Shown: positions 2,073-50,913, counted from the stretch's first letter. The stretch: DNA of 64,000 nt from Ylistrum balloti (GCF_031769215.1 NW_026782932.1:62001-126000); one strand, 5' to 3'. Translations and numbers: made by a program. Notes: a model not told the origin generated them from the sequence alone.

Positions 2073-2196
2073 GTGAGTAATTCGTTATTCCTATTCTGAA
2101 ATGACCACTTCTTGGTAGTATACCGATACCAATGCTACTGTAAATATATATACACAAACCCTTTCGTTTATAACAATGTAATTAATATCGATGTAG
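2073..2196 (+). other. Probable 5'UTR intron of TPMT copy 1
   Basis: Donor CTG|GTGAGT at 2073 and acceptor ATGTAG|G at 2196, 26 nt before the ATG. The same acceptor context precedes copy 2. Confidence 0.6.
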
Positions 2197-2222
2197 GTGA
2201 AACAATCGAGCAACTGGTAAGA

Positions 2223-2897
2223 ATGGATGACAAAACGATGCAAGGCTGGCTTAACTGTTGGGAGAAAAAAACTATTCCCTGGCACCACACTGACGTCCAC
2301 GAAACTATAGAGAAGTATTATGAAATATTGGCAGCGTCACCAACAGCCAAGAACAAAATCTTCATACCACTGTGTGGGAAGACTGTAGATATCAAATATC
2401 TGGTAGACCGCGGGAACGAGGTTGTGGGACTGGAAGCTTCCGAAATAGCAGTGAGAGATTTCTTTACAGAACAAAATATCGAATACACCTCGGAGGACGT
2501 CCCTGCCGTGAAAGGAAAATTATACCGGTCAAGTGACAAAATGATAAAGATATACTGCTGTGACCTGTTTTTATTTTCTGCTGAAGTAGAATCTGGATTC
2601 AGTGGTATCTGGGATCGAGGCTCTATGGTTGCTCTATCACCTGAAGCCCGGAAAAGATATTTCGAGATAATGAAAACACTAACATATCCAGGGATAGGTT
2701 ACTTGCTCGAAATGCCAGATCGGGATCCCAAAAATGGACCTCCATTTTTTGTTCCGTTTGACGACCTCGAACGAGGATTTGAGCAAAAGTGTAGGGTAAC
2801 AAAGCTCTTTGCCACGGAAAAATTGCCACCGGGACTGGATGGTGAAAAAATGCCGGACCTGAAAGGCATGGTTGTTTTCCGTCTTGCTTTTCAATAA
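2223..2897 (+). CDS. TPMT: Thiopurine S-methyltransferase-like protein, copy 1 (224 aa, single coding exon)
   Basis: Motifs W-x3-W, IFIPLCGKTVD, VVGLEASE, IYCCDLF, GIWDRG and GPPFFVP align with human TPMT (FFPLCGKAVE, VVGVEISE, LYCCSIF, MIWDRG, GPPFYVP). ATG at 2223. Confidence 0.92.
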   Translation: MDDKTMQGWLNCWEKKTIPWHHTDVHETIEKYYEILAASPTAKNKIFIPLCGKTVDIKYLVDRGNEVVGLEASEIAVRDFFTEQNIEYTSEDVPAVKGKLYRSSDKMIKIYCCDLFLFSAEVESGFSGIWDRGSMVALSPEARKRYFEIMKTLTYPGIGYLLEMPDRDPKNGPPFFVPFDDLERGFEQKCRVTKLFATEKLPPGLDGEKMPDLKGMVVFRLAFQ

Positions 2898-4669
2898 GAA
2901 TAACATGTATTTTTACCAGAACATTTATATTCATTTGAGTCGTCTGATGTTTTAAATTCATTTCAATGTTATTTATTTCCATAGCGTATGTTATGTACAA
3001 TATATGGTAACACAACGCAGTGTTGATAACATTTCATCAACAAAGTCTCGCAGATTTGATTCAAAGAAAATAAAATGAAGAGTCAATCTTTTTTTTAAGT
3101 ATTGTATAGTGGAGCGGGTTGAAAAATGTGTTCTATTTCTCTGGCATGTCTTACAAACTTTTCGTCGTTGACACCAGTACATAAAAGAAAGTGAATAGTA
3201 CACTTTAATGCAAATTTATCACCATCATATAAGTAATTCGTCCTGCTACAACTCGTCAGTGATGCTGAGGACCGAAATTGTTTGGCCTATGAAGCGACGG
3301 AGAAAAATCCAAATTGATCGAAACATACGTAACAAATTAAATGAAGAGATGGGCTAGTCCCGATACGCAACCTATTTAGTAATTTTCTGTATTGAATGAT
3401 ATCAAAGAACGTTGAGCACATCATGGACCGTGCCGCTATTCGAACGAATTAAATCGTGTAATGCAGGCTACGGACACGATGAGGACAAAAAAATCCACCA
3501 GCATTGTCTCTCCTCATCTGTAATATAGAAGACTGTATATAAGAAACACACGTGAATAGAATTTGTAGGGGATAGAAATTAAGAATTAGAATTGGATGTT
3601 ACGCCACCGACATACTTGCAGGTAAACACAGAGAAGCATTGGTCATGAAAAAGGTGAACGACAACCAAAGGAACTGGATCTTTACATAATATTGATTGCT
3701 AACGTGTATTATTGACATTGCATTGTCGTAGGAAGTTGTCAAAATCTTGCGGAGTGAGGTTTGGGTTTGGTTTCTTCGAGAATCCTTAAAAAGTAGAGAA
3801 TCCTGTAATATTTACGCGAAATTAGTCAGTTACACGCACCAGTCTTCATTTCAATGTATCCATTGTATGCATGGTGTACCATTACAGAATTTGCCAGGTA
3901 CCATGTAGTACGAAAGTCTGAACGAACCTGACAATGAATGACGCGAATTTCCAAGAAGTTTTGAACATTTGTAATTTGGCCTAATTCGCTGGATGATTGT
4001 AATACAGATAACGTTCACTGGAACTACACGGAAATTTCTGTTGGATTTATTTAGATTCTTATTTATTTCTATTCTATACTTGTGTTGTTGGTAGTCACGT
4101 CTGCTAAAACGATTCAATGTGTAAATCTAGTTTCTAAACAGAGTGACGTGCTTATTCACCAGACAAATGTGTTGTTCTTTTTACTCAAAGTGCCAGACTC
4201 GCTCCGTTATAAATATTTTTTTTCATATTTTATTGACTGGAAATGTTGTTGTATGCTAATAGATAATATATAAATAAAGACTTGTATAAAGTTTCGAACT
4301 TGAAATTGAAAGGGTACCGGAGATATCGGTGCCGGAATTAATCTCATTAATCAACACCAGGATATGAATATTGATGAGGAAAAGTCATGCGATACGTTCA
4401 GACGCGATCAGAACCAAAACAAAAATGGAGGAAGAGGTGAGTAGTACGTCCATGTGGTATCGCTTGTAAAGAGATTTTACCGATAAATGCAATCAATACT
4501 CTATATATCCTGTATGGAAATCATCTAACGTATGTATTGATCACATCTTTCAATGCTTAGATATGATTACGAGATTACGAGAAAAACTACGTCAAAACAC
4601 GTTTTCTTTCCCGCTTCCCTCGCACGCTTTCTGCCATGGTGGAAGACGGCGGATTTATTTACAGTTCTT

Positions 4670-4680
4670 TGCGCATGCGT
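4670..4680. promoter_or_regulatory. NRF1-like palindrome TGCGCATGCG in a CpG-richer patch
   Basis: The motif is seen directly. It may mark a promoter for TPMT copy 2, but the target is not established. Confidence 0.3.
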
Positions 4681-5460
4681 CAGAGGGCAGGACTTCCCGT
4701 TTAATTATGAATTAGCACCGAGTCGTTTCGAATTATTTTTTAAAACTATTTATTACGTTAGATTGGTAGCGATTTACTTTAAAATTGCGGTATTACAGGG
4801 TTAGTCAGAACTTTTGCTACCCGAGAAAAATAGAAAATCATGATTTTTTTAAAATATAAACTAATATCGGTTGAGGCAGGTCTGGCTCTTTAAATAATTC
4901 CAGACAACAAAACAGCCCCATTCCTTGCTATGCAACTTTTGTTTAGAATAAAAGAGGAGTTCAAAATCTGGAACGTGATTTGTTGCGTTATATAGGTCAG
5001 ACAGGACTCCGTTCACAGGTTCGATTTGTTTGGACTCAGTAACAGCGATTACTCTGACAGCTTAATCAACTCAAGGTACGTAATTTCGAATGACCCATCG
5101 TTAAGTTGTTTTGTTTTTCACTTTTATCTCTATACTTCAATATAGTTCATCAAATAATATCGCACCGGCAGAAACCGCGTAATACATTAGAAGTCCCTAC
5201 CACAGGATAAGTTAACTGCATGTATACGTTTCGTAGTGTTAAACTACTGAGAAAAGTATTTCGTAGCATAGACATTTGTGAATAACCAAACTCTTTCAGT
5301 TATTGACAAATATATTAATTGGTTCTGGCAGCCGACTTGAAGCCTTCATAATTCTTCTCCAAATTCAAGCGGTTAATTTACAAAACATTGTAGAATGGAG
5401 ACAACTCTTGTTTCTCATATAAATCATATAAATATAAATGTAGAACAGATGAAGTGAGTA

Positions 5461-7260
5461 TTCACCAAAATACAACATATACAGTAGATATTATCAAATA
5501 TACAACATATACAGTAGATATCACCAAAATACAACATATACAGTAGATATTATCAAATATACAACATATACAGTAGATATCACCAAAATACAACATATAC
5601 AGTAGATATTATCAAATATACAACATATACAGTAGTATTCACCAAAATACAACATATACAGTAGATATTATCAAATATACAACATATACAGTAGATATCA
5701 CCAAAATACAACATATACAGTAGATATCATCAAATATACAACATATACAGTAGATATTATCAAATATACAACATATACAGTAGATATCACCAAAATACAA
5801 CATATACAGTAGATATCACCAAAATACAACATATACAGTAGATATTATCAAATATACAACATATACAGTAGATATCACCAAAATACAACATATACAGTAG
5901 ATATTATCAAATATACAACATATACAGTAGTATTCACCAAAATATAACATATACAGTAGATATCACCAAAATACAACATATACAGTAGATATCACCAAAA
6001 TACAACATATACAGTAGATATTATCAAATATACAACATATACAGTAGATATCACCAAAATACAACATATACAGTAGATATTATCAAATATACAACATATA
6101 CAGTAGATATCACCAAAATACAACATATACAGTAGATATTATCAAATATACAACATATACAGTAGATATCATCAAATATACAACATATACAGTAGATATC
6201 ACCAAAATACAACATATACAGTAGATATTATCAAATATACAACATATACAGTAGATATCACCAAAATACAACATATACAGTAGATATTATCAAATATACA
6301 ACATATACAGTAGATATTATCAAATATACAACATATACAGTAGATATCATCAAATATACAACATATACAGTAGATATTATCAAATATACAACATATACAG
6401 TAGATATCACCAAAATACAACATATACAGTAGATATTATCAAATATACAACATATACAGTAGATATCACCAAAATACAACATATACAGTAGATATTATCA
6501 AACATACAACATATACAGTAGATATCATCAAATATACAACATATACAGTAGATATCATCAAATATACAACATATACAGTAGATATCATCAAATATACAAC
6601 ATATACAGTAGATATTATCAAATATACAACATATACAGTAGATATCATCAAATATACAACATATACAGTAGATATTATCAAATATACAACATATACAGTA
6701 GATATCACCAAAATACAACATATACAGTAGATATCATCAAATATACAACATATACAGTAGATATCATCAAATATACAACATATACAGTAGATATTATCAA
6801 ATATACAACATATACAGTAGATATCACCAAAATACAACATATACAGTAGATATTATCAAATATACAACATATACAGTAGATATCACCAAAATACAACATA
6901 TACAGTAGATATCATCAAATATACAACATATACAGTAGATATCATCAAATATACAACATATACAGTAGATATTATCAAATATACAACATATACAGTAGAT
7001 ATCACCAAAATACAACATATACAGTAGATATCATCAAATATAACACAAACACGGTGACTATCATCAAATATAACACTAGTACAGTGAATATCATTCAATA
7101 TAACACTTATACAGTGAATATCATCCAATATAACACTTATACAGTGAATATCATCAATTAAGCAACAGATACGGTGAATATCATTCAATATAACACAAAT
7201 ACAGTGAATATCATCCAATATAACACAAATACAGTGAATATCAACAGAAGTACAACATAT
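5461..7260. repeat. 29/30-bp minisatellite, often alternating as a 59-bp dimer, with a diverged 30-bp tail from ~7020
   Basis: Units caccaaaatacaacatatacagtagatat and tatcaaatatacaacatatacagtagatat. The minus-strand ORFs here are repeat artefacts. Confidence 0.97.
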
Positions 7261-7715
7261 ATATGTATGTTAAAGAGAGACTAGCTGTTTGATGATGTAC
7301 GAGATTCACGAATTATCATATCATTGAATGAAATCATTTTGTCAAAAAAAATTGATTTTAACCATGTCATACTTTCTCGATATATATATGTGTGTGTGTA
7401 TTTAAGTACCTGGCCTTATTTGCCATGTACTTTCTCAAGTAAAATAGTTCTTTTGTTCATATTTTGCTCTGGTTTCATTGAATTTAAGTTGGCGGACAAT
7501 TATGTTGACATGTCGATATTTTTTTAGTTTTCGAAAAAGAGCATTAATTCATTAAGCCTTTCAACCTGATCAATTTTACATCTTGGCGCTCTATCGGCGT
7601 TAGAACTAGTATTAATGAAAACCAATGCTACTGTAAATATACATACACAAACCCTTTCGTTTATAACAATGTAATTAATATCGATGTAGGTGAAACAATC
7701 GAGCAACTGGTAAAA

Positions 7716-8396
7716 ATGGATGACAAAACGATGCAAGGCTGGCTTAACTGTTGGGAGAGAAAAACTATTCCCTGGCACCACACTGACGTCCACGAAGCTA
7801 TAGAGAAGTATTATGAAATATTGGCAGCGTCACCAACAGCCAAGAACAAAATATTCATACCTCTGTGTGGGAAGACTGTAGATATCAAATATCTGGTAGA
7901 CCGCGGGAGCGAGGTCGTGGGACTGGAAGCTTCCGAAATAGCAGTGAGAGATTTCTTTACAGAACAAAATATCGAATACACCTCGGAGGACGTCCCTGCC
8001 GTGAAAGGAAAATTATACCGGTCAAGTGACAAAATGATCAAGATATACTGCTGTGACCTGTTTTTATTTTCTGCTGAAGTAGAATCTGGATTTAGTGGTA
8101 TCTGGGATCGAGGTGCTTTGGGTGCCTTTTCATCTGAAGATCGCAGAAGATATATTGAGATAATGAAAACACTAACACATCCAGGGATAGGTTACTTGCT
8201 CGAAGTGGCGGATAGGGATCCAGAGAAAGGACCTCCATTTTTTGTTTCGTTTGACGAACTCGAACAAGGATTTGGGCAAGGGTGTGGAGTAAGTAACCTC
8301 TGTACTGTGGAAAAAACACCACCTGGGATGATGGATTTGCCCGTAAATTACGCGGACCTGAAAGGCATGAAAGTTTATCGTCTTACTTTTCAATAA
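7716..8396 (+). CDS. TPMT: TPMT-like methyltransferase, copy 2 (226 aa)
   Basis: Intact ORF with the same TPMT motifs; WDRGALGAF; about 98% identical to copy 1 up to WDRG. Confidence 0.92.
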   Translation: MDDKTMQGWLNCWERKTIPWHHTDVHEAIEKYYEILAASPTAKNKIFIPLCGKTVDIKYLVDRGSEVVGLEASEIAVRDFFTEQNIEYTSEDVPAVKGKLYRSSDKMIKIYCCDLFLFSAEVESGFSGIWDRGALGAFSSEDRRRYIEIMKTLTHPGIGYLLEVADRDPEKGPPFFVSFDELEQGFGQGCGVSNLCTVEKTPPGMMDLPVNYADLKGMKVYRLTFQ

Positions 8397-8599
8397 GTTT
8401 ATCAACAAATACAAAAACTGTAACTTGTTCAAATATATTTATGTTTACCTAAAACTGCATTTAACAAGATTAGAACTTAGTGATAATATAACTAAACGCC
8501 ATTTACAGATGATAAAATTTCAAAATGTGATCTTTGTTTCAAATATTGTACACGTCATTTGTTATTCCCCACGTTAACCTTATTTTGACAAGGTACCCA

Positions 8600-9070
8600 A
8601 GTAAAACTGTACACGAAATCATAGTGTGACCAAGATGTATGATAAACGAGTTTTAATTCTTGATAGCAGTCACTGCATCGCCAATCTATGGTGTAAATAT
8701 GTCGTAGTTGATTCAAGTGCCTATTCCCTTTATCTGGATTTTCGTGCAAGAAGTCGATGACTGACTGACAAACTCGCAACACATTATTTCAGAAGATAAA
8801 AGTTGATTGAAGTTATCGAAAGGGAAGTTATACTGTCGTTAAAGTGCTCTCATTGAGAAACTTTGTATTTCAATGTGCGATGTGAGCTGGACATGTTTGA
8901 TACTGTTTGACTGTTGGTTCCGTTGTTGTATACCTTTTTCTCATATGAGAACCTTTCGTTGCTCAATCGGATTGACTATGATTTACATGGCAGATGTCGT
9001 CGATGAAGCAGCAGACGCCTATTCTTCCGGAACACCTGGTAATATTCTCTTTGTATTTTAGTAGTCTTCT
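8600..9070 (+). mobile_element. Decayed Penelope-like retroelement remnant (RT C-terminus and 3' tail)
   Basis: Frameshifted fragments TKMYDKR (8629), ASPIYGVNMS*LI and DFRARSR*LTDKL match the recalled PLE RT consensus TKLYDKRDDF...SPAYGVYISQLIRY...DF...LTNKL. A tail-like 'gcagcagacgcctattcttccggaacacctgg' follows. Confidence 0.65.
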
Positions 9071-9172
9071 TGTACATGTTTCTTTTGTTGAATTTGAGTT
9101 TGGATTAAAATTATGTTGACATGTTGGATTTTTCTCCTTGTTTCTTGTCTAGCTTGTTGACTTTGAGGTCCT

Positions 9173-9240
9173 GGATAACTCAGTCGGTGGGGTTATGGCA
9201 AACATAACCTCAAATGAAGACAGCAGGTACGATCACAACC
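9173..9240 (+). mobile_element. Degenerate tRNA-derived SINE head
   Basis: A-box-like GGATAACTCAGTCGGT and B-box-like GGTACGATCAC at tRNA-like spacing; no intact cloverleaf. Confidence 0.4.
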
Positions 9241-9753
9241 CGTAATTGGTTGTGTTTCTCAGGAAGCCGAGACATAGTTGTGTCCTTCACATGCTGCTCT
9301 AACTGCCAAGGAATGCATCCGACGAGCATAGCGTATGTTTTTCACTGAAGTAGTCACTGGTAGCTACTACAAACATACCCCTGTCGAAGTGTCAATTAGG
9401 AATGAGTGTTTTTGTGGTTGATTAACAACGATACAATATATTACAAACTTAATTAAGACACAAACAAGGCGTTCAAATGCTTTTTCATGTTTCGTACGCA
9501 AGTGATGCCATTGGATGAAAGGATATAGCAAATGCTGTCTTGAAGAAAAATATGTATGTTACATTTCTGTTTTATTATTTGTTATTATATCATGAAAATC
9601 ATCTCTCATTGAATGAGAAGAAGGTATATTTCTTACCTATATCGATATGGTTTGTAAAAGTGAATTAACATTCTTCAGTAGCACAGACACTGAAATCTTA
9701 GAGCTAAAACAAGAATTAGACTGCCCTAAACAGCTTTTACTCGTTAGTGATGC

Positions 9754-9791
9754 CAGAGACATATATAACACATGTGATATATACGTCTCTG
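9754..9791. mobile_element. 38-bp palindromic micro-MITE flanked by a 7-bp target-site duplication
   Basis: gtgatgc[cagagacatatataacacatgtgatatatacgtctctg]gtgatgc. The arms have two mismatches and the termini are CAGAG...CTCTG. Confidence 0.65.
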
Positions 9792-12019
9792 GTGATGCTA
9801 CGTGCCTAAATTGTCAAAACATATGATACGATTAAGGAGGATCCAAATTAGTCGAAACAAATGCCATTAACCAATATGGCGGTGCACTATCCCACAAATT
9901 ATATAAATTTTGTAACTTTAAATGTTTCATTGTTGACAACCTGATGGTTGTTGTCGGTTCACGCGGGTTTGTGTGTTATTTAGTATACCTATAGTTTGGG
10001 TCACTAATCATACAGGTGGTATTCCGGGGTGATCAGCTCGTTCTGCACTATTGTATCTTTACAGCAAGACTAGACTAGGTGGGTATCGTGTAAGCACCTA
10101 TTTCGAGCAAGTAAGATATAAATATAACTGCGAGACAGAATGAGCTTTCACTGTTCTAGATTAATCACTCCTACATCATGTTAAAGTCAACATGAGGTTG
10201 TGTGTTGGTGAGTGTGTAGGGAAGAATTATAATGGTGGTTTTGGCAATCTCGCCCTCTCCCCCAACTTTCCAAGTCAAACGTCGTGTGTTCGTAGTCTAT
10301 CCTTAATCGTGAAATTATTACAGCGTGCATGCATATTTTACTATTAGGTTAACGTCATACATATTCTGAATAATACAAACTAGTACCATAACTAAAATTT
10401 CGTTTTGCAAGGCTGTGTTGAAATGTTTGGAAAATCTTTATTTATGACTAAATCTACTACTGGTGTTAAAAATGTGTGTCTCGCTGCAGTTTTTATGCAC
10501 ATAAAATGTCTTAAAACCCTTTTGTATCCATTCAAAAACGTATCGTTTTACCTGCGATATCGTCAAAACCATCATATAAATCGCCCCTATGTCAACATTA
10601 TTACCCGTCCTGTCCTAATGTTCACCTAAACACGATGTCTAAGCACCAGACCTTCCAAATTATGCTGCAAATATCGTCTTTCTGTGACCTAACTACAATC
10701 ATGATAGCTGTTGAAAACGAGAACAAAATCGGTCTAAAATCTTTAATCATTGAACAACATATTTTTCAGTCTTTCGGTTGCCAAAAAAAAAAAGAACAAG
10801 TATTTTTATATAATTTACATTTGTTCAAATATCATTAGCTAAATACATAATTCATTTGTTATTTGGAGATTCCGTAAAAGAAAACAAAAATTGGCTGAAG
10901 GACCATATTTAAAATGGAGGCATTTGAAACGTTACGAAATTCAACTGTGCTAGAGAGAAAATTATCATTTATGTCATGTAAAATTGTGACGAAAAAGGAC
11001 TTTACCGTTGCAAGAACTACGTAAATTGACATCAATGAAAATGAAATGACGAATGATTGTTTGCAAAACAATAGAAAAGCAGCATAGCCGACAATCTGCG
11101 TGTTTAGTGGTGGTTTCGAAAATTAAAAAGAACAAACAAAATATAATATAATGTTACTTGTCCTCCCTTCTCGGCCTCCGAACTTTTTCACGCTCCAAAG
11201 CAGATGAATTGGGATATGCAACCTACATGATTCATGGTAGTCCACACCTTTACAATAATAACGTAGGATATACACAGTTAATATCGGCCTCGTCACGGTA
11301 TACTGATGTCGTCGTAACAAACATCATCGATATTAGGAGACTGTCGAGCATCCGAATAATTTACCATCGAAACCTTCTTTGCTGTGTATTTTATAAAGTG
11401 TTAATATATTAATATATACCGGATATTAGAACTTGGTTCACATTGAATTTTGATTATGTTGATATAAATCCAGCAAACAAACGCCCAAAGTGTCTTGTTA
11501 CAAGAGTTTTACATGCAGCCCCCGTCGAACATCGCGAATTGTGGCGATGTTAAACCCAAATACACTCTGCATATGAATCACTCTACATTATGCCCTAAAA
11601 TTGTTACCAGACTTCTACAAATGCCATTATATTGTCAATTATCTGGCATCAAAATCAAAATAACCCCATGTTGGCTCTCATTTATCGTTAATAGGAACAA
11701 AACATGCAGTGGTTTTGAAGGACTGTGCAAATCTGGAACAAGAAAGGTGCACCTTTCAATGCAATAGCTGAAGTAAGATAGTTAAAACAAACCAATAAGC
11801 ATGAATCTACATGGGATAAAGAAACAAACCCTCGTTTTACATGCTAAGCACTCGTCAATTATTATATCAGATTGTACAAAAGTCACGTGAACAAACAATA
11901 TCAGCGGGGAAAGGCAGACAACTAAAGGTGGTTTGTCAAATACGGATAATTGTTGTCCGTAAAAGTAATTGTGTCTGTATTTTTCTTAAGGTCTAAACAT
12001 ACGTACCAGTGAGAGTGAA

Positions 12020-12688
12020 ATGGATGCCGATGAGATGCAGGGCTGGCTAAACTGTTGGGAGAAGGACACAGCACCTTGGCACATTCATCATGTACACGAA
12101 GCTATAGAGAAGTATCATGAAATATTGGCAGCGTCACCAACAGCCAAGAACAAAATCTTCATACCTCTGTGTGGGAAGACTGTGGATATCAAATACCTGG
12201 CAGACCGCGGGAACGAGGTTGTGGGACTGGAAGCTTCCGAAATAGCAGTGAGAGATTTCTTTACAGAACAAAATATCGAATACACCTCGGAGGACGTCCC
12301 TGCCGTGAAAGGAAAATTATACCGGTCAAGTGACAAAATGATCAAGATATACTGCTGTGACCTGTTTTTATTTTCTGCTGAAGTAGAATCTGGATTTAGT
12401 GGTATCTGGGATCGAGGCTCTCTGATTGCTATGTCACAAGCAGACCAGAAAAGATACATTGGCCTTATAAAGACACTAACATATCCAGGAATTGGTTACT
12501 TGCTTGAAATGCCTGATCGTGATCCGAACATTGGTCCTCCATTTTCTGTTCCACTTGATGTTCTCGAGACAGGATTCGGACCAGGTTGCAGAGTTGTTCA
12601 ATTGTCAGAAGTGGTAAAAAATCCACCGGAGTTTCTCTCCATGCCTGGCGTGAAAGGAAACCACGTCTATCGTATTTCCTTTCAATAA
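12020..12688 (+). CDS. TPMT: TPMT-like methyltransferase, copy 3 (222 aa)
   Basis: Intact ORF with TPMT motifs; WDRGSLIAM; acceptor-like ttttcttaag ends at 11990. Confidence 0.92.
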   Translation: MDADEMQGWLNCWEKDTAPWHIHHVHEAIEKYHEILAASPTAKNKIFIPLCGKTVDIKYLADRGNEVVGLEASEIAVRDFFTEQNIEYTSEDVPAVKGKLYRSSDKMIKIYCCDLFLFSAEVESGFSGIWDRGSLIAMSQADQKRYIGLIKTLTYPGIGYLLEMPDRDPNIGPPFSVPLDVLETGFGPGCRVVQLSEVVKNPPEFLSMPGVKGNHVYRISFQ

Positions 12689-13562
12689 GACTATTAAATA
12701 CATGGCAGGCTGTCCTATGTACTATTGATTAATACATCAATGTCTATTACCATTGTATATACATAACTTTTTATATATTCTATTCATTAATACAGTAGTT
12801 ATACATAAGACATTATATACAATTAGAAAATTGGAAAAACACCAGATATCGACGTTATTTAACTAGCTTAAGCCGAAATACATCAATACGTAATATATAA
12901 CAGCACAATTAAATGCACCTCCTCTGTCTAATTCACAACGTTGCCTTGTGTAAGTTTGCATCTTTCAATTGTAACTCTTTTGCGCAAAATAAAGGAAAGA
13001 TTTTGAGGTAAACTAATCAAAAAGTGTTTTTATCAGTTGCTATTCAATACTCCAACCACTAACTTAGGTTTAATTACCTCGGTTCCATCATTAAAAAGTC
13101 CACGTTTAGGTGATCCAGGTCTCAACGTGTGGATACATTTCACACAAGAAAGGCTCATGACTACTTATTTGATTTTTTTTCAGTCAAAAATATGTCCATA
13201 ACCAATAACAAAGGCCTTACACCAAACCAAAGACAGTCGACGTTGACATTTAGTGTTTGTTTTTCAGTTGTTTTCGTCAAAAAGATAATTAAGTATGTGT
13301 ACTAGACTTCCTTACCAGAGGTAATCAAATCGTAACCGTACGGCAAGCACATTCAGACACTTCAGGCCTGTCGTGACAAATCCTATTGGCGCAGAGGATT
13401 GGACCAGTAGTAGAAGATATCTACATTTTGGATTTTACGAATAAAAACCTACCAAAATGTCTTGATGCTTGTAACTTAAAGCAACTAATCTTATATGCAT
13501 ACTTTAAACAAATCTACTTTTTATCGTGTCTATTTATTTCCATTAGGTGTCGGTGGCGGACG

Positions 13563-14231
13563 ATGTCGTCTGATCAGATCCAAGGATGGCTTAATAACTG
13601 GGAAAGTGACTGTACACCATGGCACATGACAGACGTACACGAAGGTTTGGCTAGGTACTATCAAATGTTGGTAAACAAGACTTCTGTCCATAATAAAATA
13701 TTCATTCCTCTATGTGGAAAGTCTGTGGATATTAAATGGCTTGCCGATCGCGGGAACGAAGTGGTAGGAGTAGAAGCTTCTGAAACAGGTTTGATGGAAT
13801 TCTTTGTCGAGCAAAACGTAAAGTATTCTGTGGAAAGCGCTCCTTCTGTTGATGGAAAGCTTTTTCGGTCCCACGACAATAAAATTCGACTTTACTGCTG
13901 TGATATTTTTCATTTCACTAGCGATGTAGAATCCGGTTTCAGCGGGGTGTGGGATCGAGGTTCAATAGAGGCTCTTGAGCCCGAGGACAGGAAAAAATAC
14001 ATAGATCTGATGAAAACTCTAATTGGCCCGGAGACAGGCTATTTAACAGAGATCGTTGAACGTGATCTTGGCAAAGGACCGCCGTTTTGTATTACAGTAG
14101 ATGAACTCCGAGCAGGATTTGGCCCAGGATGTGAGGTCAAGAAATTGATGACCACTACAAAACTGCCTCCATACGCCTTTCATGTTCCTGACTTAATTGG
14201 TTTTAATGTTTTTTCTATTTCGTATCGCTGA
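13563..14231 (+). CDS. TPMT: TPMT-like methyltransferase, copy 4 (222 aa, most divergent)
   Basis: IFIPLCGKSVDIKWLADRG, VVGVEASE, LYCCDIF, WDRGSIEAL and GPPFCI. ATG at 13563 follows acceptor ttccattag. Confidence 0.92.
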   Translation: MSSDQIQGWLNNWESDCTPWHMTDVHEGLARYYQMLVNKTSVHNKIFIPLCGKSVDIKWLADRGNEVVGVEASETGLMEFFVEQNVKYSVESAPSVDGKLFRSHDNKIRLYCCDIFHFTSDVESGFSGVWDRGSIEALEPEDRKKYIDLMKTLIGPETGYLTEIVERDLGKGPPFCITVDELRAGFGPGCEVKKLMTTTKLPPYAFHVPDLIGFNVFSISYR

Positions 14232-15254: not shown

Positions 15255-16445
15255 ATTAATATATACTGGCAAGCTTTGTTCTTGTATGTGTAAAGTTAAT
15301 ATACTGACAAGCTTTGTTCTTGTAGGTGTAAAGTTAATATACTAGCAAGGTTTGTTCTTGTAGGTGTAAAGTTAATATACTAGCAAGGTTTGTTTTTGTA
15401 GGTGTAAAGTTGATATACTAGCAAGGTTTGTTTTTGTGGGTGTAAAGTTAATATACTGGCAAGCTTTGTTCTTGTGGGTGTAAAGTTAATATACTTGCAA
15501 GATTTGTTCTTGTGGGTGTAAAGTTAATATACTGGCAAGCTTTGTTATTGTGGATGTAAAGTTAATATACTGGCAAGCTTTGTTCTTGTGGGTGTAAAGT
15601 TAATATACCGGCAAGCTTTGTTCTTGTAGGTGTAAAGTTAATATACTATCATGGTTTGTTCTTGTAGGTGTAAAGTTAATATACTAGCAAGTTTTGTTTT
15701 TGTAGGTGCAAAGTTAATATACTAGCAAGGTTTGTTTTTGTGGGTGTAAAGTTAATATATACTGGCAAGCTTTGTTCTTGTATGTGTAAAGTTAATATAC
15801 TTGCAAGCTTTGTTCTTGTGGGTGTAAAGTTAATATACTGGCAAGCTTTGTTATTGTGGATGTAAAGTTAATATACTGGCAAGCTTTGTTCTTGTGGGTG
15901 TAAAGTTAATATACTTGCAAGCTTTGTTCTTGTGGGTGTAAAGTTGATATATACTGGCAAGCTTTGTTCTTGTGGGTGTAAAGTTAATATACTGGCAAGC
16001 TTTGTTCTTGTAGGTGTAAAGTTAATATACTAGCAAGGTTTGTTCTTGTAGGTGTAAAGTTAATATACTAGCAAGGTTTGTTCTTGTAGGTGTAAAGTTA
16101 ATATACTAGCAAGGTTTGTTTTTGTAGGTGTAAAGTTGATATACTAGCAAGGTTTGTTTTTGTGGGTGTAAAGTTAATATACTGGCAAGCTTTGTTCTTG
16201 TGGGTGTAAAGTTAATATACTTGCAAGATTTGTTCTTGTGGGTGTAAAGTTAATATACTGGCAAGCTTTGTTCTTGTGGGTGTAAAGTTAATATACTTGC
16301 AAGCTTTGTTCTTGTGGGTGTAAAGTTGATATATACTGGCAAGCTTTGTTCTTGTGGGTGTAAAGTTAATATACTGGCAAGCTTTGTTCTTGTGGGTGTA
16401 AAGTTAAGAGACTGGCACGGTTTGTTCCTACGGGTGTAAAATCCA
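15255..16445. repeat. 38-bp minisatellite, ~31 copies
   Basis: Unit gtaaagttaatatactggcaagctttgttcttgtgggt; period 38 (e.g. 15961 and 15999). Confidence 0.96.
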
Positions 16446-17209
16446 AGAGACCGGCACGGTATGGTCCCCACGGGTGTAAATATCGACAGTCTGTCTGAAG
16501 CTCTTACCACCAAACTCTACGAAGACTTCTTTTACTGCTGTATCACAAAAAGATTTTTACTCCTATGTAATGAAGGAAAATGCAATCACCAAGACACCTG
16601 GTTCTATCACAATAAGATTTTGCGAGAGAGTCACAACGCCATCAGTAATCATTAACTTCCATATCAGAAAGCAAGGAAACATTCCAAAGACACAAGAAAA
16701 TACATGATGGGTTCAGGATCGCAAAAAGGAAATTTTGATTTTTTGATTGATACCATTTAAAGCACATATAGACAGCGTGATTGAGCAGCAGTAACAGAGC
16801 GGTGAAGATTTTTGTTCTGTTTTTAGTTTTGCTTTTCTGTTTTTGTTTTGTAATGAGGTTTAACGTACTTCCCAGAGCTATGTAAACCACAGAAAAAAAA
16901 ATTCAGAGAGAAAAAAGACAAATGTGTATATCATTAATCACTAATATGGACAAATCTTTTGACACACATGTCTGCAGACGTTTTCAATACTCATATATTC
17001 TTATATTCAATACATATGTTCGTAAAGGCATATATCAAAAGACTCAGTGGAAATACTCCAAAGTTACAAGTAAATGGATGTTCAACGATAGATAAAAACA
17101 ATCAGATGTTGTCTATAAAGGTGGAATTAAGAAATGTATCATGTTTTTATCTGATAATGTAAATTACCAGGGTTACACGTTGTTGAAGTTATGATTTTGA
17201 AATATCAAA

Positions 17210-18262
17210 CCTTTCTTTATCCTCGCTCATTATCCTCGCTCTTCATACTCACTCTTTATCCTCGCTCTTTATCCTCGCTCTTTATATTCACTCTTTATCC
17301 ACACTCCTTATACTCACTCCTTATACTCACTCTTTATCCACACTCTTCATACTCACTCTTTATCCTCGCTCATTATCCTCGCTCTTCATACTCACTCTTT
17401 ATCCTCGCTCTTTATACTCACTCTTTATCCACACTCTTTACACTCGCAATTTATACCCACTCTTTATACTCGCTCTTTATACTCACTCTTTATACACACT
17501 CTTTATACTCACTCTTTTTACCCACTCTTTATACTCACTCTTTTTACCCACTCTTTATACTCACTCTTTTTACTCACTCCTTTGACTCGCTCTTTATACT
17601 CGCTCTTCATACTCACTCTTTTTACCCACTCTTTATACTCACTCTTTTTACTCACTCCTTTGACTCGCTCTTTATACTCGCTCTTCATACTCACTCTTTA
17701 TCCTCGCTCTTTATATTCACTCTTTATCCACACTCTTTATACTCACTCTTTTTACCCACTCTTTATACTCACTCTTTTTACTCACTCCTTTGACTCGCTC
17801 TTTATACTCACTGTTTTTACTCACTCTTTATACTCACTCCTTTTACTCGCTCTTTATACTCACTCTTTTTACTCACTCTTTATACTCGCTCGTTATACTC
17901 ACTCTTTATATACAATATTTATCCACACTCTTTATACTCACTCTTTTTACTCACTCCTTTTACTCGCTCTTTATACTCGCTCTTTATACTCACTGTTTAT
18001 ACTCACTCTTTATACTCACTCATTTTACTCGCTCTTTATCCACGCTCTTTATACTCACTCTTTTTACTCACTCTTTGTACTCACTCCTTTTACTCGCTCT
18101 TTATACTCGCTCTTTATACTCACTCCTTTACTCGCTCTTTATACTCACTCTTTATCCACGCTCTTTATACTCGCTCTTCATACTCACTCTTTATCCACGC
18201 TCTTTATACTCTCTCTTTATACTCACTCTTTATACTCGCTCTTTATACTCATTCCACGCTCA
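17210..18262. repeat. Degenerate ~13-bp pyrimidine-rich tandem repeat
   Basis: Variants of cactctttatact and cgctctttatact. The overlapping L/Y/S/T/H-rich ORFs are artefacts. Confidence 0.93.
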
Positions 18263-19875
18263 TTCCACGTATGAAATGAAATGGAAATTACACAATATAC
18301 ATAAGTAAGGAACTGAATCTTGCATCTATTGTCGATATCTCATTTTTGGCAATATGTAAATAAGTCTGCAAATCCTCGAATGTGAATAAGGTGTCTTTAA
18401 TTCTTATGGATCTTGGTACCACGATATTAGATATATGTAGTAATACATACACAGTCACTTGTTCGCCACCAAAACAAAATTCTAATTTTGAATCGTCCTG
18501 GAATATATTTATACATTGTGTTCCTAGGTCCATCAACTAACAGATGATGATGATTAGTTTCGTTTGCCTCAGGACAGGAACAAGGTGGAATTGCTGATAG
18601 TTTATTTAAAGCAAAAGACGTATGTTAGTGAACTACGTTTCATTCTGAGCCTGACATGATATACAAAATGTATTTGAATTATCTTATTACCACTGATTCT
18701 TTTTGTAGTAAGTTCCTGTTCAGATTTAACTTTTTTGCTAACGGATTCATCACTTCCTATTGAGGCAGGAGCGGCTATGAAACTTTTCGATAAAAGTTTG
18801 CTCTACAGTTTGGTCTAAAACTATTTGGTTTCTAGTGTTATAGTGATGGATCCGAATATCGTTCTGGGAGAATGGAACTTAGATACAGCAGGGTAATGTT
18901 ATTCATGGTGGTCTGTTTTGTAAATTATATTATTTTTTGACGGTCTTCCTTCAAGAAAGCGTTTACCGTCCTGTTTCGTATGATGTCGTATACACATGGA
19001 GAGTGTAACATTCCAGTTATTTTGTCCAAAGCCGGACACGAGACCGAATTACTTCCTTCCTTTCTTCTTTCTTTCATTCTTTCAATGGTGGGAACGTACA
19101 TGATAAGTGGGGGAAAGTTTACCAACATCAAACTTTTGGAAAAATATATGTTAAGATTTCTGGCATATCAAGAAAATAAGAAAAATCACGTTTTAACCTT
19201 CTTTGAAATGCGATATGTACATCTTGTGTCGTAATCAATATGGAAAATCAACAGTGCTATAAGTACAACTAAAACAACATACACATTTACCAATCTTTTC
19301 AACTGTAGTTTTGCATTGAAAAATATCGGACTATCAATATCGCTTTTAAACACCTGACTTGGCGATAATGGCTTTTGTTGTCTTTTTAAATATACTGAGA
19401 AAATGTCATTAATTATAGTAACAATCAGTGCGTATAGCTGACATGTACATAACTATCAGATTGAAGGAAATATATACCCTTACTTTCATAGTTCAAGCAT
19501 AAGTATGTGCCTGACACACAAATAATGTTTGGGTTTATCATTATTTAATTTTTTTTATTTTGTTCCATTTAATACATTAATCAAGCAGCTATTTCATTGA
19601 CTTGATCTAGCTATAACAGTTCTTGGCATACTGCCAGCAAGAAGTAGAGGTGGACGTCTGCCGTTATATTTTGATACGAGTTGTTTCCCTTTGATCATTA
19701 TGAACTAAGCAATTTTACCTTAGCCGGTCATTTTTTTCATTTTACCTATTCTTGCAGTGAAATATAAATCTTATGATAGCTAGTAAATCAAAGTTGATAG
19801 GTTATGTCTATCAATGTTGAAAAATCCTCGCTTCAAGCCATATTTTACTGTTTTCTTTCAATGTTCTCTTACTTG

Positions 19876-20066: not shown

Positions 20067-22754
20067 GTAACGGAATATTCCTTCGAAAATACAACCCAAT
20101 TTCTGTTTTTTTCTTGCATTTACATCTGTCATTCATCACGATTTTCCCATGCCAATTATTCGTTTGACGTGTTAAGCACTTTTCAGTAAAGAGGTTTGTT
20201 GGTATATGTGTATGTGTAGCTAATGCCATATGTATTTGACATGACTATTGGTGCATATTTTAAAAATACATTATTTGTAATCCACACCCCCCCTTCCCCT
20301 GATAAATATTAGGCCTATATTCTGCATCAAGTCCTGGATGCACGATGTGTAGCAAAATAAATGCTCATTTCTATTCTTAAACCTCACGTAAAGCAATATG
20401 ATGTAAATGAGGCGAGATGTAAGTTCATTCTGCCAATGACACGTAATGCAACATTTGTTTTATTAAAAAAAAACTTTCATTCATTGAAAGTGAAAACTGG
20501 TCACGAGACCTTCCCAGATGATGACGATCTGTATTTCGTTCTATAACCACCACTCCCACTTGCACCTAATTTTGAAATTACAGTAACCAGATACAACTCT
20601 TTGTATAGCATCTTGCTTGGTAAGAGAACATGGCCGTGAAAAAATATGTTGCATTTGATGGAACTACAGATGTCTGTGAAACTTATCTTGCACATCAGAA
20701 AAGTCTCATTAATAATCTTAAAACCTTTTCTGATTATGCGAAAGATATGTAAGAGAAGAAAACATTGGTCACTCCCATGATAGAAATACTAAGTAGCATC
20801 TGAGACATGATGTGATAGTCTAGTTATGTCAAGATCTCTTGATGGATTCCTTTTATTAATCAATAAGCAGATATACATTGGAAAAAGACGTTTATCTCAG
20901 AAGTGTCACAGGCACATTGCATATAAATAAAGGTGCCATCAAATAGGGCTTTTCTCGTCCACTGAAAGGCAGAAAGGCCGTAAAAGTGGATGTTAAACCT
21001 GTTAAATAAAAAAATAAATATGGACAATGGAACTGATGATTAAATGCCATGGCATTGCTTTGGGACACTGGAGGATATCAGCTTTCCTAGTAGGAGAGTA
21101 TAACATGATAAAATAATAGCTGTTTGATGTTTGAGAAAATCTCCATTTACATCATTGGATAGCACAATGTAGTATTTTTATAGCAAAGCTTCCTGATTTT
21201 ATGCTTATAGTGGATGCTTCCTATGTTGCAATCAATATTGGTATTACGGTGAATAAGCTGGATGCCGCTTAATATTGTAAAAACACTCCAAAATGGGTTT
21301 ATTTCTGCACTTAAATTATAGATAATATAAAGGACTTTGGTATTTTCTGTTATGGCAAGCTTTTACCTTGTAGATTTATTTATGATTGAGCAATTGTTAA
21401 TTATCTCCTCCCTGTGGTTTGAAGCTGGTTGTATTCAAACTGATAACAGCCAAATATAAAGAAGCAATAGAATGAGTGTTGAGATATTGTATTTTATAAC
21501 AACCAGAGAACTACCCAAACCTGAGACACTTCACTGAACTTTGATATATATACCGAACTGAGAAAACACGTCAAATAATAGTAGTTATAATAAACCTGTT
21601 CTATATTCTGAATAAGATACTGCCATTCAGTGTGACATTAAGTTTGCATTGACCAGAATGAGATCTATGCAAGATTTTCCCAACTGGTCTAGTCTAAATA
21701 TCATGAGATACTGTAATGTACACTGTAAACTATATTTTTCACAATAAATATACAGTGGACTTTACATATATGAAAGCTCTGTTGACATTTGGGCACTTCT
21801 AGTTCAAATGTAGGAATAATAATTTTATCACTGATTCTTATGGTTCATCTAATACATAATTGTCCAGGCATACTATTACTTTTGAACAGTGTGAGATATC
21901 TTGATGAAACTTAAAACATAACTTTTATGGCTGCATCACACACACGTGCCAAAAATAGGTCAACGTGACCTTTACAGTACCTCAAGATTAAAGGTCAAAT
22001 ATGTGCAAAATTCCCAGGACATAAAGAATGAGTAATAACTTTTGAGTTGTCAAGGAAAGTTTGATGAAATTTAAGAAAAATAACTAAATCATCCACAGGT
22101 GGCTACAGTGCACTGAAATTAGGTTACTTTCACATTCACCTTCAGGTCAAAGGACAAATAAGTGCAACTTTTTAGGATCCACTTTTTGAAATAAAATTGT
22201 ATCTTGATGACAACTGAAATGTTTACATCTCGCACAGGTGATGAGAAGTGCATTAAAGTAAGATCTCTGACTGTGACATCTGTCTTAACATCAAAGTTAA
22301 ATTGAATGGAAATTTAGTATATATCTTGGCAATAATGTAATGATTTCTCATTATGATATAATGAATCAAAGACGATTTGAAGTTCAATGTGAAGTCACAT
22401 TGTATAAGTGGAGATCAGTGATATGTTTTAAATAACAAAGTCTGTTTATCTTTTTACTGGTATATCTTATTCATATTTTTTTTATTTATCTCACTTCTTT
22501 TTCCATTTTTGTAAATGAATAGGAAAGAGGTTCTTTGCAAAAGGGACGCATACATTTAGGCGGCAGAAACACTTTTCAAGTTTTATTTTAGTCTTGCAAG
22601 TCATTTATTTCCAAGAATATGATACTGTTCATTGTAGATGTATCAATTTTTTGAAAAAGCCTACCACAAAAAAAGAGTGATGTCAAAGAAAAATTATGAT
22701 TTGGTCAATTTAAGTAAATAACCTCATTATTTTATTTTGCTTATTGTCTTTTAG

Positions 22755-24897
22755 AAATCTACCACATGGAGTCCCATGGCAATTTGACCAGAGTGGATCA
22801 AACAATGGTAAAGATGTCCAACCTGTTACTGAAGGTGATACCAGCTCACAGCCGGAGGTAGCTGCCACATCAAATAGACACACATACCAACAAGACTGTA
22901 GTCAATATAACAGCCAGGCACCTCCACATCCAGTGGCCCTCACACGTGCACTTTACAAAGACAAAAATGTTCGGCGAATTCGATTACGCCCAAGGCAAAC
23001 CTTGTGTAACAAATGTAAAGCTGTCTGTACTGAAACAGACAAAGGTATTGTGCCAGTCACAGCTGTAACAAAACAACAAAAACCCACACCAGTACACCAG
23101 CCATCTCCTGCACCGATATCGCGTAGGCCTCTCAAGGAAGGGTTGAGGAAACGACCAGCACCACAACCTAGTTCACAACCTCAGACTTATTCATCACGAA
23201 GGAAGTCACTTATTCAGAGCAAACCAGTCTCATCCAGGATTCCATCAAGAACTATGTTAACTCGTAGTGATTCTCTCCCGGAAAGTAGGGTTGTGTTATC
23301 GCGAAGAGTTTCTCTGACTGAATCTAAGACTGTGTCAAGTCGGAGGGAATCTTCTTCTGAACTTAGAAATGTGTTATCACGTAGAGAGTCTCTACCAGAG
23401 AGCAGAATAGTGTTAACTCGTAGGGAATCCCTTACAGATAAAATAGTGTCAAATCGTAAAGACTATAACTCAGAAAGTAAACCTGTGACATCTAGAAGGG
23501 ATTCTAATCCCGAGACTAAACCATTACCATTGCGGAAAGATTCGAATGGTGAAGCAAAGTTATTGACTGCAGTTGTAAATGAGAATAAAATACAGAAATT
23601 AGATAAATCATCAGCAGCTAATACTAAGGCAAGTCCATTGATAAAGATAACAATTGGGGAAGGGACAGTTATCAAGATCCCTCCCCGTATCCATGGTGAT
23701 GAGGTAGATGGAGAGGGACAGAGTCCAGTGAAGACACAAGAGACAGATTCTAATGATCAAACAAGTAGTTCAGAAGAAATGTCACCATACAAAAAGCTTA
23801 AAAGGGCATTTAAAAAACCAAAAGATAAGAAAGATTCAGAAAATAATTCTTCTGGAATTCAAATGTCTTATCTTGTATCTAGTCACCATAAAAAACACAA
23901 GCGGAAACATCGCCATCGTCATGGAAGTCATAGCAATGATAGTGATGTGTTTCAGCCAGAAGGTGATATGTTAGACATGTTTGATGAAAATGGTGAAACT
24001 CATTCAGAAACTACACAAACAGAGGTTATTTCTCAGCGTCCTCGACTCCTTTACACATGGCGACAAAACAAAGGACTTTCACCTAGGCGAGATATCAACA
24101 AAGGGCTTTCACCTCGGCGAGATGTCAACAAAGGGCTTTCACCAAGACAGGAAAACACATCATTCAGTAAGATTGACATATCTATGTCTCCAAAAATAGC
24201 ACCAAACATAGAAAACACTTCATTTGGTAACCTGGACAAGGCTTTGTCTCCTAAAATTAAATCCAATGAAAATGTTGAGGTTCAGAAGAAAGAATATCGA
24301 CTGAGAAGTCGAGAAAGGAATAGTACTGAATCTGAATCTGTGGACTCTGTTATAACAGATGATTCAGAAGAGTCATGTGAGGATGCCGATATGTTAGGTG
24401 ATAGCTTTACAGTAAAGACTGTTCTGGACAGTGAAAATGACCATAGTGCAAAGTCAGAGGAATGTTCGGGAACAGAGGATGAGGAGGGGCCCCCTGGAGA
24501 CACCAATATCGAGTCCCTACGACCTTTGATGATGAAAATTCAGACTCATGATGTCACAAAGTGTGTGGCTACGGATGGTAGGAGTATACATGTAGGGGAC
24601 ATTGTGTGGGGTAAAATACAGGGCTTTCCCTGGTGGCCTGGGCGTGTTCTCTCCATCACTGTAAGTCAGCGTGATAACGGAATCATGATTCGTCAGCTGG
24701 CTCATGTATCCTGGTTTGGGTCATCAACTATGTCTCACATACAGTGTTCAGACTTGTACCCATTCCTTGAAGACTTTAAACTACGGTTTAACAGGAAGAA
24801 ACGTGGGCCTTACAAGATGGCAATTAAACAGGCCACAATAGCCGCACAGAGTATTACTAATACTCACCATATTGACTTCACAGAATTTGACTTATGA
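22755..24897 (+). CDS. PWWP2: PWWP2 coding exon 2, with C-terminal PWWP domain (763 aa total)
   Basis: Acceptor ttttag at 22754. Contains RLRPRQTLCNKCK (as in PWWP2A RPRQVLCDKCK) and the PWWP domain VGDIVWGKIQGFPWWPGRV...VSWFG. Confidence 0.92.
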
Positions 24898-30667: not shown

Positions 30668-32100
30668 GTCAATACTCCATGATACATAGGATCTACATGT
30701 ATAGGGATGAACTCTGTGATACATAGGATCTCTATATAGGGACAGTCTCCATGATACATAGGATCTACATGTATAGGGACGAACTCTGTGATACATAGGA
30801 TCTCTATATAGGAACAGTCTCCATGATACATAGGATCTACATGTATAGGGACGAACTCTGTGATACATAGGATCTCTAAATAGGGACAGTCTCCATGATA
30901 CATAGGATCTACATGTATAGGGACGAACTCTGTGATACATAGGATCTCTATATAGGGACAGTCTCCATGATACATAGGATCTACATGTACAGGGACGAAC
31001 TCTGTGATACATAGGATCTCTATATAGGGACAGTCTCCATGATACATAGGATCTACATGTATAGGGACGAACTCTGTGATACATAGGATCTCTATATAGG
31101 GACAGTCTCCATGATACATAGGATCTACATGTATAGGGACGGACTCAGTGATACATAGGATCTCTATATAGGGACAGTCTCCATGATACATAGGATCTAC
31201 ATGTATAGGGACGAACTCTGTGATACATAGGATCTCTATATAGGAACAGTCTCCATGATACATAGGATCTACATGTATAGGGACGAACTCTGTGATACAT
31301 AGGATCTCTAAATAGGGACAGTCTCCATGATACATAGGATCTACATATATAGGGATGGACTCAGTGATACATTGGATCTACATGTATAGGGATGGACTCG
31401 GTGATACATAGGATCTCAATATAGGGACAGTCTCCATGATACATAGGATCTACATATATAGGGATGGACTCAGTGATACATAGGATCTACATATATAGGG
31501 ATGGACTCAGTGATACATAGGATCTACATATATAGGGATGGACTCAGTGATACATAGGATCTACATGTATAGGGATGGACTCGGTGATACATAGGATCTA
31601 CATGTATAGGGATGGACTCGATGATACATAGGATCTACATGTAGATGGACAGTCCCCATGATACATAGGATCTACATATATAGGGACAGTCCCCATGATA
31701 CATAGGATCTACATATATAGGGACAGTCCCCATGATACATAGGATCTACATATATAGGGACAGTCCCCATGATACAGGGGATCTACATGTATAGGGACAG
31801 TCCCCATGATACATGGGATCGACATGTATAGGGACAGTCCCCATGATACATAGGATCTACATGTATAGGGACAGTCCCCATGATACATGGGATCTGCATA
31901 TATAGGGACAGTCTCCATGATACATAGGATCTACATATATAGGGACAGTCCCCATGATACATAGGATCTACCTATATAGGGACAGTCCCCATGATACATA
32001 GGATCTACATGTATAGGGACAGTCCCCATGATACATAGGATCTACATATATAGGGACAGTCCCCATGATACATAGGATCTACATATATATGGACAGTCTC
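30668..32100. repeat. Satellite: 72-bp dimeric units changing to 37-bp monomers
   Basis: The 24-codon repeat MYHGDCPYIEILCITEFVPIHVDP gives period 72. The distal unit ccccatgatacataggatctacatatatagggacagt has period 37 and forms the GGGAC-A-GTCCC palindrome across unit junctions. Confidence 0.96.
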
Positions 32101-50742: not shown

Positions 50743-50793
50743 TGAATTAAGGGAAATAATATTTCCATTAATTAGAACATCTCTTTCCATCAG

Positions 50794-50913
50794 AAATGTA
50801 CTGGTAGAATCTGCAAGAATAGCCAGAGGGAAAATTGATGCTTTATCAAACTTAGATTCCTCCAAATTTGATGCTGTCATCCTACCTGGTGGATTTGGAG
50901 CTGCCAAAAATTT
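50794..50913 (+). CDS. GATD3: GATD3 exon 4 ([12 protein letters not shown]...[15 protein letters not shown])
   Basis: DJ-1/PfpI family [10 protein letters not shown] motif; catcag / GTGAGC boundaries. Confidence 0.93.

Follow-up and report, generated by a model that had tools for sequence, protein, structure and literature searches.

The first 15 kb of a 64,000-nucleotide stretch of the Ylistrum balloti genome (GCF_031769215.1 NW_026782932.1:62001-126000; hereafter the window, in which all positions are counted) carry a tandem array of four genes, c1 to c4, related to thiopurine S-methyltransferase (TPMT). We consider it very probable that these genes represent a scallop cluster of intronless TPMT paralogues composed of two old subtypes, that the three copies of one subtype (type A; c1, c2 and c3) have been partly overwritten by gene conversion, and that the encoded proteins, together with the single type-B copy (c4), are S-adenosylmethionine (SAM)-dependent methyltransferases whose substrates probably differ between the subtypes. 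The array itself is real, intact and TPMT-like. As a lineage-specific expansion it is of a fairly ordinary kind, in an enzyme family already known; within that family it is a scallop-specific intronless subfamily.

Each of the four open reading frames (ORFs) is uninterrupted over 222-226 codons, and each product matches the TPMT profile PF05724 (E 1e-43 to 3e-45, 148-155 bits; gathering cut-off 26) from position 3 to about 196 of 218, with the last 22 profile positions lost. A preliminary description made from the sequence alone had proposed four intact tandem TPMT-like paralogues; four ORFs are indeed present on the plus strand, beginning at 2223 and ending at 14231 as it had placed them, and the motifs it quoted are exact, namely PWH near the N-terminus, SMVAL, ALGAF, SLIAM or SIEAL after WDRG, and four Pro-Pro loops of variable length. 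Its statement that the SAM-binding motifs are kept also holds: c1-c4 retain every column with complete or at least 90% conservation in an alignment of 36 TPMT-family proteins, including the SAM-side set of PLCGK, the G and E of the second strand, the D of YCCD, WDRG and GPPF. Its framing of TPMT as single-copy in vertebrates does not apply here, as the host is a scallop and the closest relatives of the array are all scallop proteins. An independent short-read DNA run of the same species (~0.6% off the assembly) spans the last third of c2, the whole of c3 and most of c4; the covered coding parts of these three genes contain no indel or stop, and differ from the assembly by three synonymous and three missense changes. 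A genome search found no additional TPMT-like copy on the contig of the array. The subfamily is already annotated in public databases, where the proteins closest to the array are all named "probable thiopurine S-methyltransferase" of scallops, and a literature search on scallop or bivalve TPMT expansions found no study of this subfamily.

Features of the TPMT-like array in the window
Feature	Position	Strand	Description and evidence
c1, type-A TPMT-like gene	2223..2897	+	single-exon coding sequence, 224 aa; ORF and PF05724 match (E 3e-45); colinear with full-length annotated scallop proteins
c2, type-A TPMT-like gene	7716..8396	+	single-exon coding sequence, 226 aa; ORF and PF05724 match; AlphaFold model, TM 0.85 to mouse/human TPMT
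c3, type-A TPMT-like gene	12020..12688	+	single-exon coding sequence, 222 aa; ORF and PF05724 match; contigs of independent DNA run
c4, type-B TPMT-like gene	13563..14231	+	single-exon coding sequence, 222 aa; ORF and PF05724 match; 76-81% orthologues in three scallops
Conversion tract in c1	2128..2618	+	codons 1-132 with the preceding 95 bp, common to c2; codons 26-134 also common to c3; repeat family D6, flank identity
Conversion tract in c2	7621..8111	+	partner of the c1 tract; repeat family D6, flank identity, chi-square
Conversion tract in c3	12095..12421	+	codons 26-134, common to c1/c2; chi-square, contig breaks and double depth
Unconverted C-terminal third of c1	2619..2897	+	post-WDRG loop, GPPF, variable Pro-Pro loop, last strand; dS 0.37 to c2 and 1.15 to c3, dN/dS 0.68 and 0.28
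Unconverted C-terminal third of c2	8112..8396	+	dN/dS comparison; loop 201-210 of low model confidence
Unconverted C-terminal third of c3	12422..12688	+	dN/dS comparison; tail like Argopecten type A

The SAM-binding two-thirds of the type-A copies are ~97.5% identical in DNA, and the switch from identical to diverged sequence at WDRG is mainly a boundary of interlocus gene conversion. The preliminary description had noted kept SAM-binding motifs followed by diversified substrate-side residues; the contrast is real, but it mainly reflects where conversion ends, with the synonymous divergence (dS) jumping from 0.08 to 0.37-1.15. Tract bounds were determined by a maximal chi-square scan with 200 permutations, and dS and its nonsynonymous counterpart (dN) by the Nei-Gojobori method. 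Between c1 (2223-2618) and c2 (7716-8111) there are 8 differences in 396 nt inside the tract and 64 in 276 outside, and between c3 and c1/c2 there are 7-8 differences in 321-327 nt inside and 114-116 in 339-345 outside; no permutation out of 200 reached the contrast in either case. Among c1-c3, codons 28-133 have a dS of 0.075-0.091 (dN/dS 0.09-0.16), and codons 1-27 have a dS of 0 between c1 and c2 (dN/dS undefined) and of more than 2 between c3 and c1/c2 (dN/dS 0.10-0.12). The synonymous sites of the core are free to vary, because codons 28-133 are saturated when c1-c3 are compared to c4 (dS above 2.8; dN/dS 0.06-0.10). Overall, dS is 0.08-0.09 inside the tracts versus 0.37-2.4 outside them, the pattern expected of interlocus conversion.

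The surrounding DNA bears on the mechanism. The 5' similarity of c1 and c2 extends 95 bp before the ATG and then stops abruptly, the flanks being unrelated beyond -95, and no similarity was found downstream of the stop codons. Gene conversion is indicated because the tracts are bounded on both sides within otherwise unrelated intergenic DNA; these two-sided boundaries reject recent duplication, and the end of the c1/c2 similarity at -95 likewise rejects unequal crossing-over. Support for the c3 tract also comes from the independent run, whose contigs break at 12095-12124 and 12388-12417, the piece between them having double depth and following the c2 sequence. Five apparent variants at 12184-12220 in that run were discarded as c2 sequence cross-laid on c3 rather than polymorphism. 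We therefore conclude that non-allelic conversion has overwritten part of the type-A copies, in c1 and c2 along codons 1-132 with the 5' flank, and in c3 along codons 26-134 shared with c1/c2, and that the last third of the type-A copies retains the true, older divergence of the paralogues. Partial interlocus conversion is a general phenomenon in tandem paralogues, for example in opsin, RH and globin genes, and the array resembles such cases in its tracts of a few hundred bp, sharp bounds, homogenised synonymous sites and non-homologous flanks; it differs in that the boundary coincides with the junction of the cofactor-binding and substrate-side parts. Within the 95-bp upstream stretch common to c1 and c2, a TATATATA element lies ~70 bp before the ATG (window positions 2146-2153 and 7639-7646) and is followed by a possible splice-acceptor-like TGTAG; a core promoter and the end of an intron in the 5' untranslated region both fit.

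Within the unconverted C-terminal third, dN/dS is below 1 in every comparison of the four copies (0.14-0.68). The values are 0.68 for c1 versus c2 (dS 0.37) and 0.28-0.38 for c1/c2 versus c3 (dS 0.94-1.15), and comparisons with c3 and c4 (0.14-0.38) are all significantly below 1 (p <1e-3), indicating purifying selection; the c1/c2 value is not (Fisher p 0.23). A neutral divergence of this segment, named in the preliminary description as the contrary outcome, would thus fit the youngest pair and not the older comparisons, which are clearly under constraint. The unconverted codons 1-27 of c3 have a dN of 0.24-0.26, close to that of its C-terminal third (0.33-0.35). Where conversion is absent, namely among orthologues, between types A and B, and among the three Argopecten type-A copies, the ratio of protein divergence in the C-part to that in the N-part is 0.9-1.9, compared to 4.9-16 in the type-A pairs of Y. 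balloti and 4.9 in the Pecten maximus type-A pair; homogenisation of the N-part thus accounts for most of the contrast. Even so, the C-part of c1, c2 or c3 differs by 36-44% from that of any known type-A protein, compared to 22-31% for orthologues at that distance, and the end branches of c1-c3 in a C-part tree (0.32-0.35) exceed those of Pecten and Mizuhopecten (0.10-0.18) two- to threefold. Faster evolution of the C-part after duplication is thus real, and either relaxed constraint or adaptive change fits it. As regards the codon-based selection tests suggested in the preliminary description, no C-terminal dN/dS is above 1, and positive selection is not shown.

The split between the subtypes is older than the scallop radiation. 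The proteins closest to the array are all from Pecten maximus, Mizuhopecten yessoensis and Argopecten irradians, and the age of the split follows from the presence in these three scallops of c4 orthologues (76-81% identity), each sharing its contig with a type-A gene. In the tree, c4 groups with a Mizuhopecten protein (P0010) with support of 100/99. Type B is stable and single-copy, and type A has been gained, lost or homogenised in each lineage, with at least two type-A copies in Pecten, three in Argopecten (plus one type B) and three in Y. balloti. The C-part tree is a near star, in which orthologues of c1, c2 and c3 could not be resolved among the genes of the other species, and the tail of c3 resembles that of Argopecten type A. 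The post-WDRG residues and Pro-Pro loop of c4 are nearly unchanged over four scallop species, a conservation that points to a stable function distinct from those of c1-c3.

To place the fold, structure prediction was applied to c2 alone of the four copies, yielding an AlphaFold model with a mean predicted local distance difference test score of 89.4 and low confidence in loop 201-210 (block mean 68). The model has a class I SAM-methyltransferase fold with TPMT topology, and its top Foldseek matches are mouse and human TPMT (2GB4, 2BZG, 3BGD), with a template modelling (TM) score of 0.85 and a root-mean-square deviation of 2.6-2.8 Å over 225 columns, so that the structural check proposed beforehand supports the family assignment. 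Its TM scores to bacterial TPMT and to HOL-type halide methyltransferases are only 0.63-0.70, the HOL type alone giving 0.64-0.70. The nearest solved structures by phmmer are again mouse and human TPMT (E 1e-39 to 1e-40), with HOL-like enzymes at E 2e-5 to 8e-4, and in neither sequence nor fold are the array copies nearer to HOL enzymes than to TPMT. They also fall below the cut-offs of the bacterial equivalog TIGR03840 (128-142 bits; cut-off 223.2) and of the equivalog NF009732 (120-134 bits; cut-off 213). The HOL and HTMT enzymes (Arabidopsis HOL1, 3LCC; fungal 9H04-9H09) share the Pfam clan and family, the general fold and an N-terminal Pro-Trp pair with the array, but are far more distant in sequence and TM score, and have PWD where the array has PWH. 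The resemblance between these two motifs, raised in the preliminary description, is superficial, because the TPMT histidine is kept and tryptophan is usual at this position in bacterial TPMT (G-W-H) and is seen in further paralogues of invertebrates, such as that of the bivalve Solemya with I-P-W-H; PWH is a variant of the TPMT motif G-[FW]-H.

Canonical animal TPMT (human and mouse; 2BZG, 2H11, 2GB4, 3BGD/3BGI) belongs to the same Pfam family as the array, is alike in fold over the whole length, and is 33-35% identical in structural alignments; the array retains PLCGK, VVG-x-E, YCC, WDRG and the equivalents of R152 and P196, with an aromatic residue (W) at the F40 position. The array genes are not, however, canonical TPMTs: they lack one of the two substrate arginines, and they are not one-to-one multi-exon orthologues with the ERHK-x-WG region. 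Their coding sequences are intronless, as opposed to at least eight coding exons in the canonical gene of the same genome, and they are multiplied in tandem. They further carry PWH in place of G/A-F-H, one of G, G, E or Y at the R226 position, and a length-variable Pro-Pro loop where canonical TPMT has a helix and loop ahead of its last strand.

The residue differences are located at the predicted substrate side of the pocket. Residues are numbered here as in human TPMT, consistent with the variant positions A154 and Y240. In the mammalian enzymes, no polar residue other than R152 and R226 (R147 and R221 in mouse) lies near 6-mercaptopurine. These arginines recognise 6-mercaptopurine, hydrodisulfide, glutathione persulfide and selenium anions, and the R152E substitution strongly lowers activity (PMC13089183; PMC7705256). 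R152 corresponds to the WDRG arginine and P196 to the second proline of GPPF, both retained in all copies, and F40 is replaced by the tryptophan of PWH. By contrast to R152, R226 aligns to the residue directly after the Pro-Pro pair (MAFFT and the profile-profile alignment of hhalign agree), which is G in c1 and c2, E in c3, Y in c4 and every type-B orthologue, D in Argopecten type A, T or K in Pecten type A, and K in bacterial TPMTs. The suggestion that the Pro-rich C-terminal segment replaces a human region is therefore supported by two alignment methods, the loop substituting the stretch that holds R226. Substrates of class I methyltransferases are bound by residues after the fourth strand, which is where the five post-WDRG residues lie; the third of these is V, G, I, E, Q or D across the subfamily.

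An altered pocket that differs between subtypes A and B is plausible from these alignments, given the G, G, E and Y found in place of R226, and divided substrate specificity is likewise plausible for type A versus type B. All four proteins are most likely, as predicted from their sequences, SAM-dependent methyltransferases acting on a soft nucleophile (thiol, sulfide or selenide). By analogy with TPMT, catalysis would involve three conserved features, namely the arginine of WDRG, an aromatic side chain in PWH and the proline of GPPF. Lacking the second substrate-recognition arginine, the enzymes probably accept substrates that differ from those of canonical TPMT and also between A and B: its loss would argue against the small anions favoured by canonical TPMT, and with an acidic or aromatic residue in its place, neutral or cationic thiols may be preferred.

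With regard to origin, the eleven scallop sequences form one clade in a maximum-likelihood tree (99/99), and this clade groups with animal rather than bacterial TPMTs (86/89). In the simplest account, the array descends from an old intronless copy of animal TPMT that was then duplicated in tandem, with retroposition as the likely route to the intronless gene. The lack of introns had suggested horizontal acquisition from bacteria instead, and both the tryptophan of PWH and a Pro-Pro motif at the equivalent place before the last strand do occur in bacterial TPMT/Tpm (TIGR03840, selenium and tellurium methylation; 1PJZ), which belongs to the same family. We nonetheless rejected this origin as highly improbable on the basis of the tree and of the animal best matches. 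The array is 38-47% identical to animal TPMTs and only 28-35% to bacterial ones, the animal-type motifs YCC and FFTEQN are present, and the composition fits the surrounding AT-rich genome. A HMMER scan of 1.84 billion representatives returned nothing above 47% identity outside the scallop cluster, and the top ten matches looked up from that scan were all animal. Those with a single domain belong to a limpet, a chiton, a lamprey and Capitella, and outside scallops the nearest relatives are the TPMTs of Patella, Liolophura, lamprey and Capitella.

Multi-unit TPMT models in Owenia, Capitella, Tubulanus, Branchiostoma and Clavelina resemble the array in having two or three TPMT units per locus or model and in varying the x-[FW]-H and post-WDRG motifs between units; they differ in being only 31-40% identical to the scallop copies and in being modelled as fused proteins. 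On the strength of these five genera, multiplied TPMT genes seem common in marine invertebrates. The models (P0038-P0045, from annelids, a nemertean, amphioxus and a tunicate) may be genuine multi-domain proteins, or else neighbouring tandem genes that annotation has joined into one.

Several points weigh against the interpretation of the array as four working enzymes of two subtypes with conversion-homogenised type-A copies. The dN/dS of 0.68 between c1 and c2 is indistinguishable from neutral drift, so that one of the two could be decaying. The mapping of residues in the variable loop is uncertain, given that the loop cannot be aligned past the R226 position and that model confidence is lowest there. 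In addition, the 3' ends of the two conversion events coincide within ~25 nt at the WDRG codons although their 5' ends differ (-95 versus codon 26), a coincidence that chance explains only moderately (roughly 0.07) and that is suggestive, even if the drop in homology alone would also enforce coincident 3' ends. This coincidence is among the observations favouring a more elaborate, and in our view unlikely, account in which the array has a constant/variable design: conversion would homogenise the SAM module, and selection would bar it from a diversifying substrate third, leaving one substrate per copy. This account takes the reading of the preliminary description and supplies it with a mechanism. 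The elevated C/N divergence ratios of Y. balloti and Pecten maximus and the long C-part end branches of c1-c3 described above would both be expected from such a design, as would a C-terminal dN/dS that is highest in the youngest pair, and the varying positions include the R226 site and the loop just past the catalytic-site arginine. However, no dN/dS exceeds 1, and the value of 0.68 is not significantly different from 1 or from relaxed constraint; the 20-30% divergence of the C-terminal third halts heteroduplex in any case, making the boundary self-reinforcing without selection; and the three type-A copies of Argopecten show no mosaic. It is similarly doubtful, in our estimation, that the type-A trio and type B amount to four methyltransferases, each with a thiol, sulfide or selenide substrate of its own, conversion being stopped by selection at the catalytic arginine. 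If that were true, the Pecten maximus mosaic would make the constant/variable array a recurrent feature of the scallop subfamily.

The opposite possibility is that some type-A copies lack expression and are drifting, most of all c1 or c2, the array then reflecting duplication under relaxed constraint with no division of labour. The c1/c2 ratio in the unconverted third is compatible with this, and the number of type-A copies varies among scallops as in a birth-and-death family. We judge it improbable all the same: the four reading frames have remained open over their whole length despite a dS of 0.37-1.15 in the unconverted parts, every family-invariant residue is retained, the second individual has neither indel nor stop, and the comparisons with c3 and c4 are significantly below neutrality. 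Accordingly, we favour a cluster of two old subtypes in which conversion has overwritten part of type A.

Elsewhere in the genome, a search with oyster TPMT located the canonical multi-exon gene at ~550.6-557.9 kb of another contig (G000:C794; L019/L020) as pieces of at least eight exons, which carry IGFH and the ERHK-x-WG region and correspond to the Y. balloti RefSeq protein P0205; the exons were matched to this protein piece by piece rather than as a joined coding sequence. P0205 matches PF05724 from 2 to 217 of 218 (218 bits) and retains the R226-type arginine. It also has an N-terminal extension of ~50 aa, absent from the array genes, that could be a targeting sequence. Three more intronless TPMT-like ORFs, two in tandem on contig C333 and one on C44, bring the family to eight members in all. 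The tandem pair (L005:1066-2091, at G000:C333:793209-794234, and L007:1426-2130) has lost the catalytic-site arginine, with WDSG and WDAG for WDRG, and the L005 ORF is extended at its N-terminus by ~130 aa with a very high content of His, Glu and Gly, resembling a metal-binding tail. The third ORF (L006:1414-2154, on G000:C44) retains WDRG and has a long branch in the tree.

The window also holds several blocks of repetitive DNA. A 1.8-kb minisatellite with a 30/59-nt period and spurious long minus-strand ORFs lies between c1 and c2 (5462-7261), and tandem arrays flank the cluster at 677-1182 (110-nt unit, 4.6 copies) and 15261-16440 (38-nt unit, 31 copies). The intergenic regions 8900-9300 and 9700-9900 are high-copy dispersed repeats, as judged from the independent DNA run, in which their depth reaches hundreds to thousands. 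Further downstream, an open frame of 717 aa that ends in a PWWP domain (22744-24897) is probably a large exon of a chromatin-reader gene, long satellite-like arrays at 17191-18308, 30529-31335 and 48115-50907 read as repetitive ORFs, and GC skew is strong in the 48-51 kb block.

TPMT owes its prominence to drug metabolism in humans. What it does naturally is only beginning to emerge, namely the methylation of selenide, hydrosulfide and persulfides (PMC13089183). For work on these paralogues, the mosaic structure of the array carries a warning: whole-gene trees and identities mislead, and short-read assemblies collapse the common tract. As a natural set of pocket variants, the array could reveal how substrate choice is set in the TPMT fold, and could help to explain the handling of sulfur, selenium or dietary thiols in marine invertebrates.

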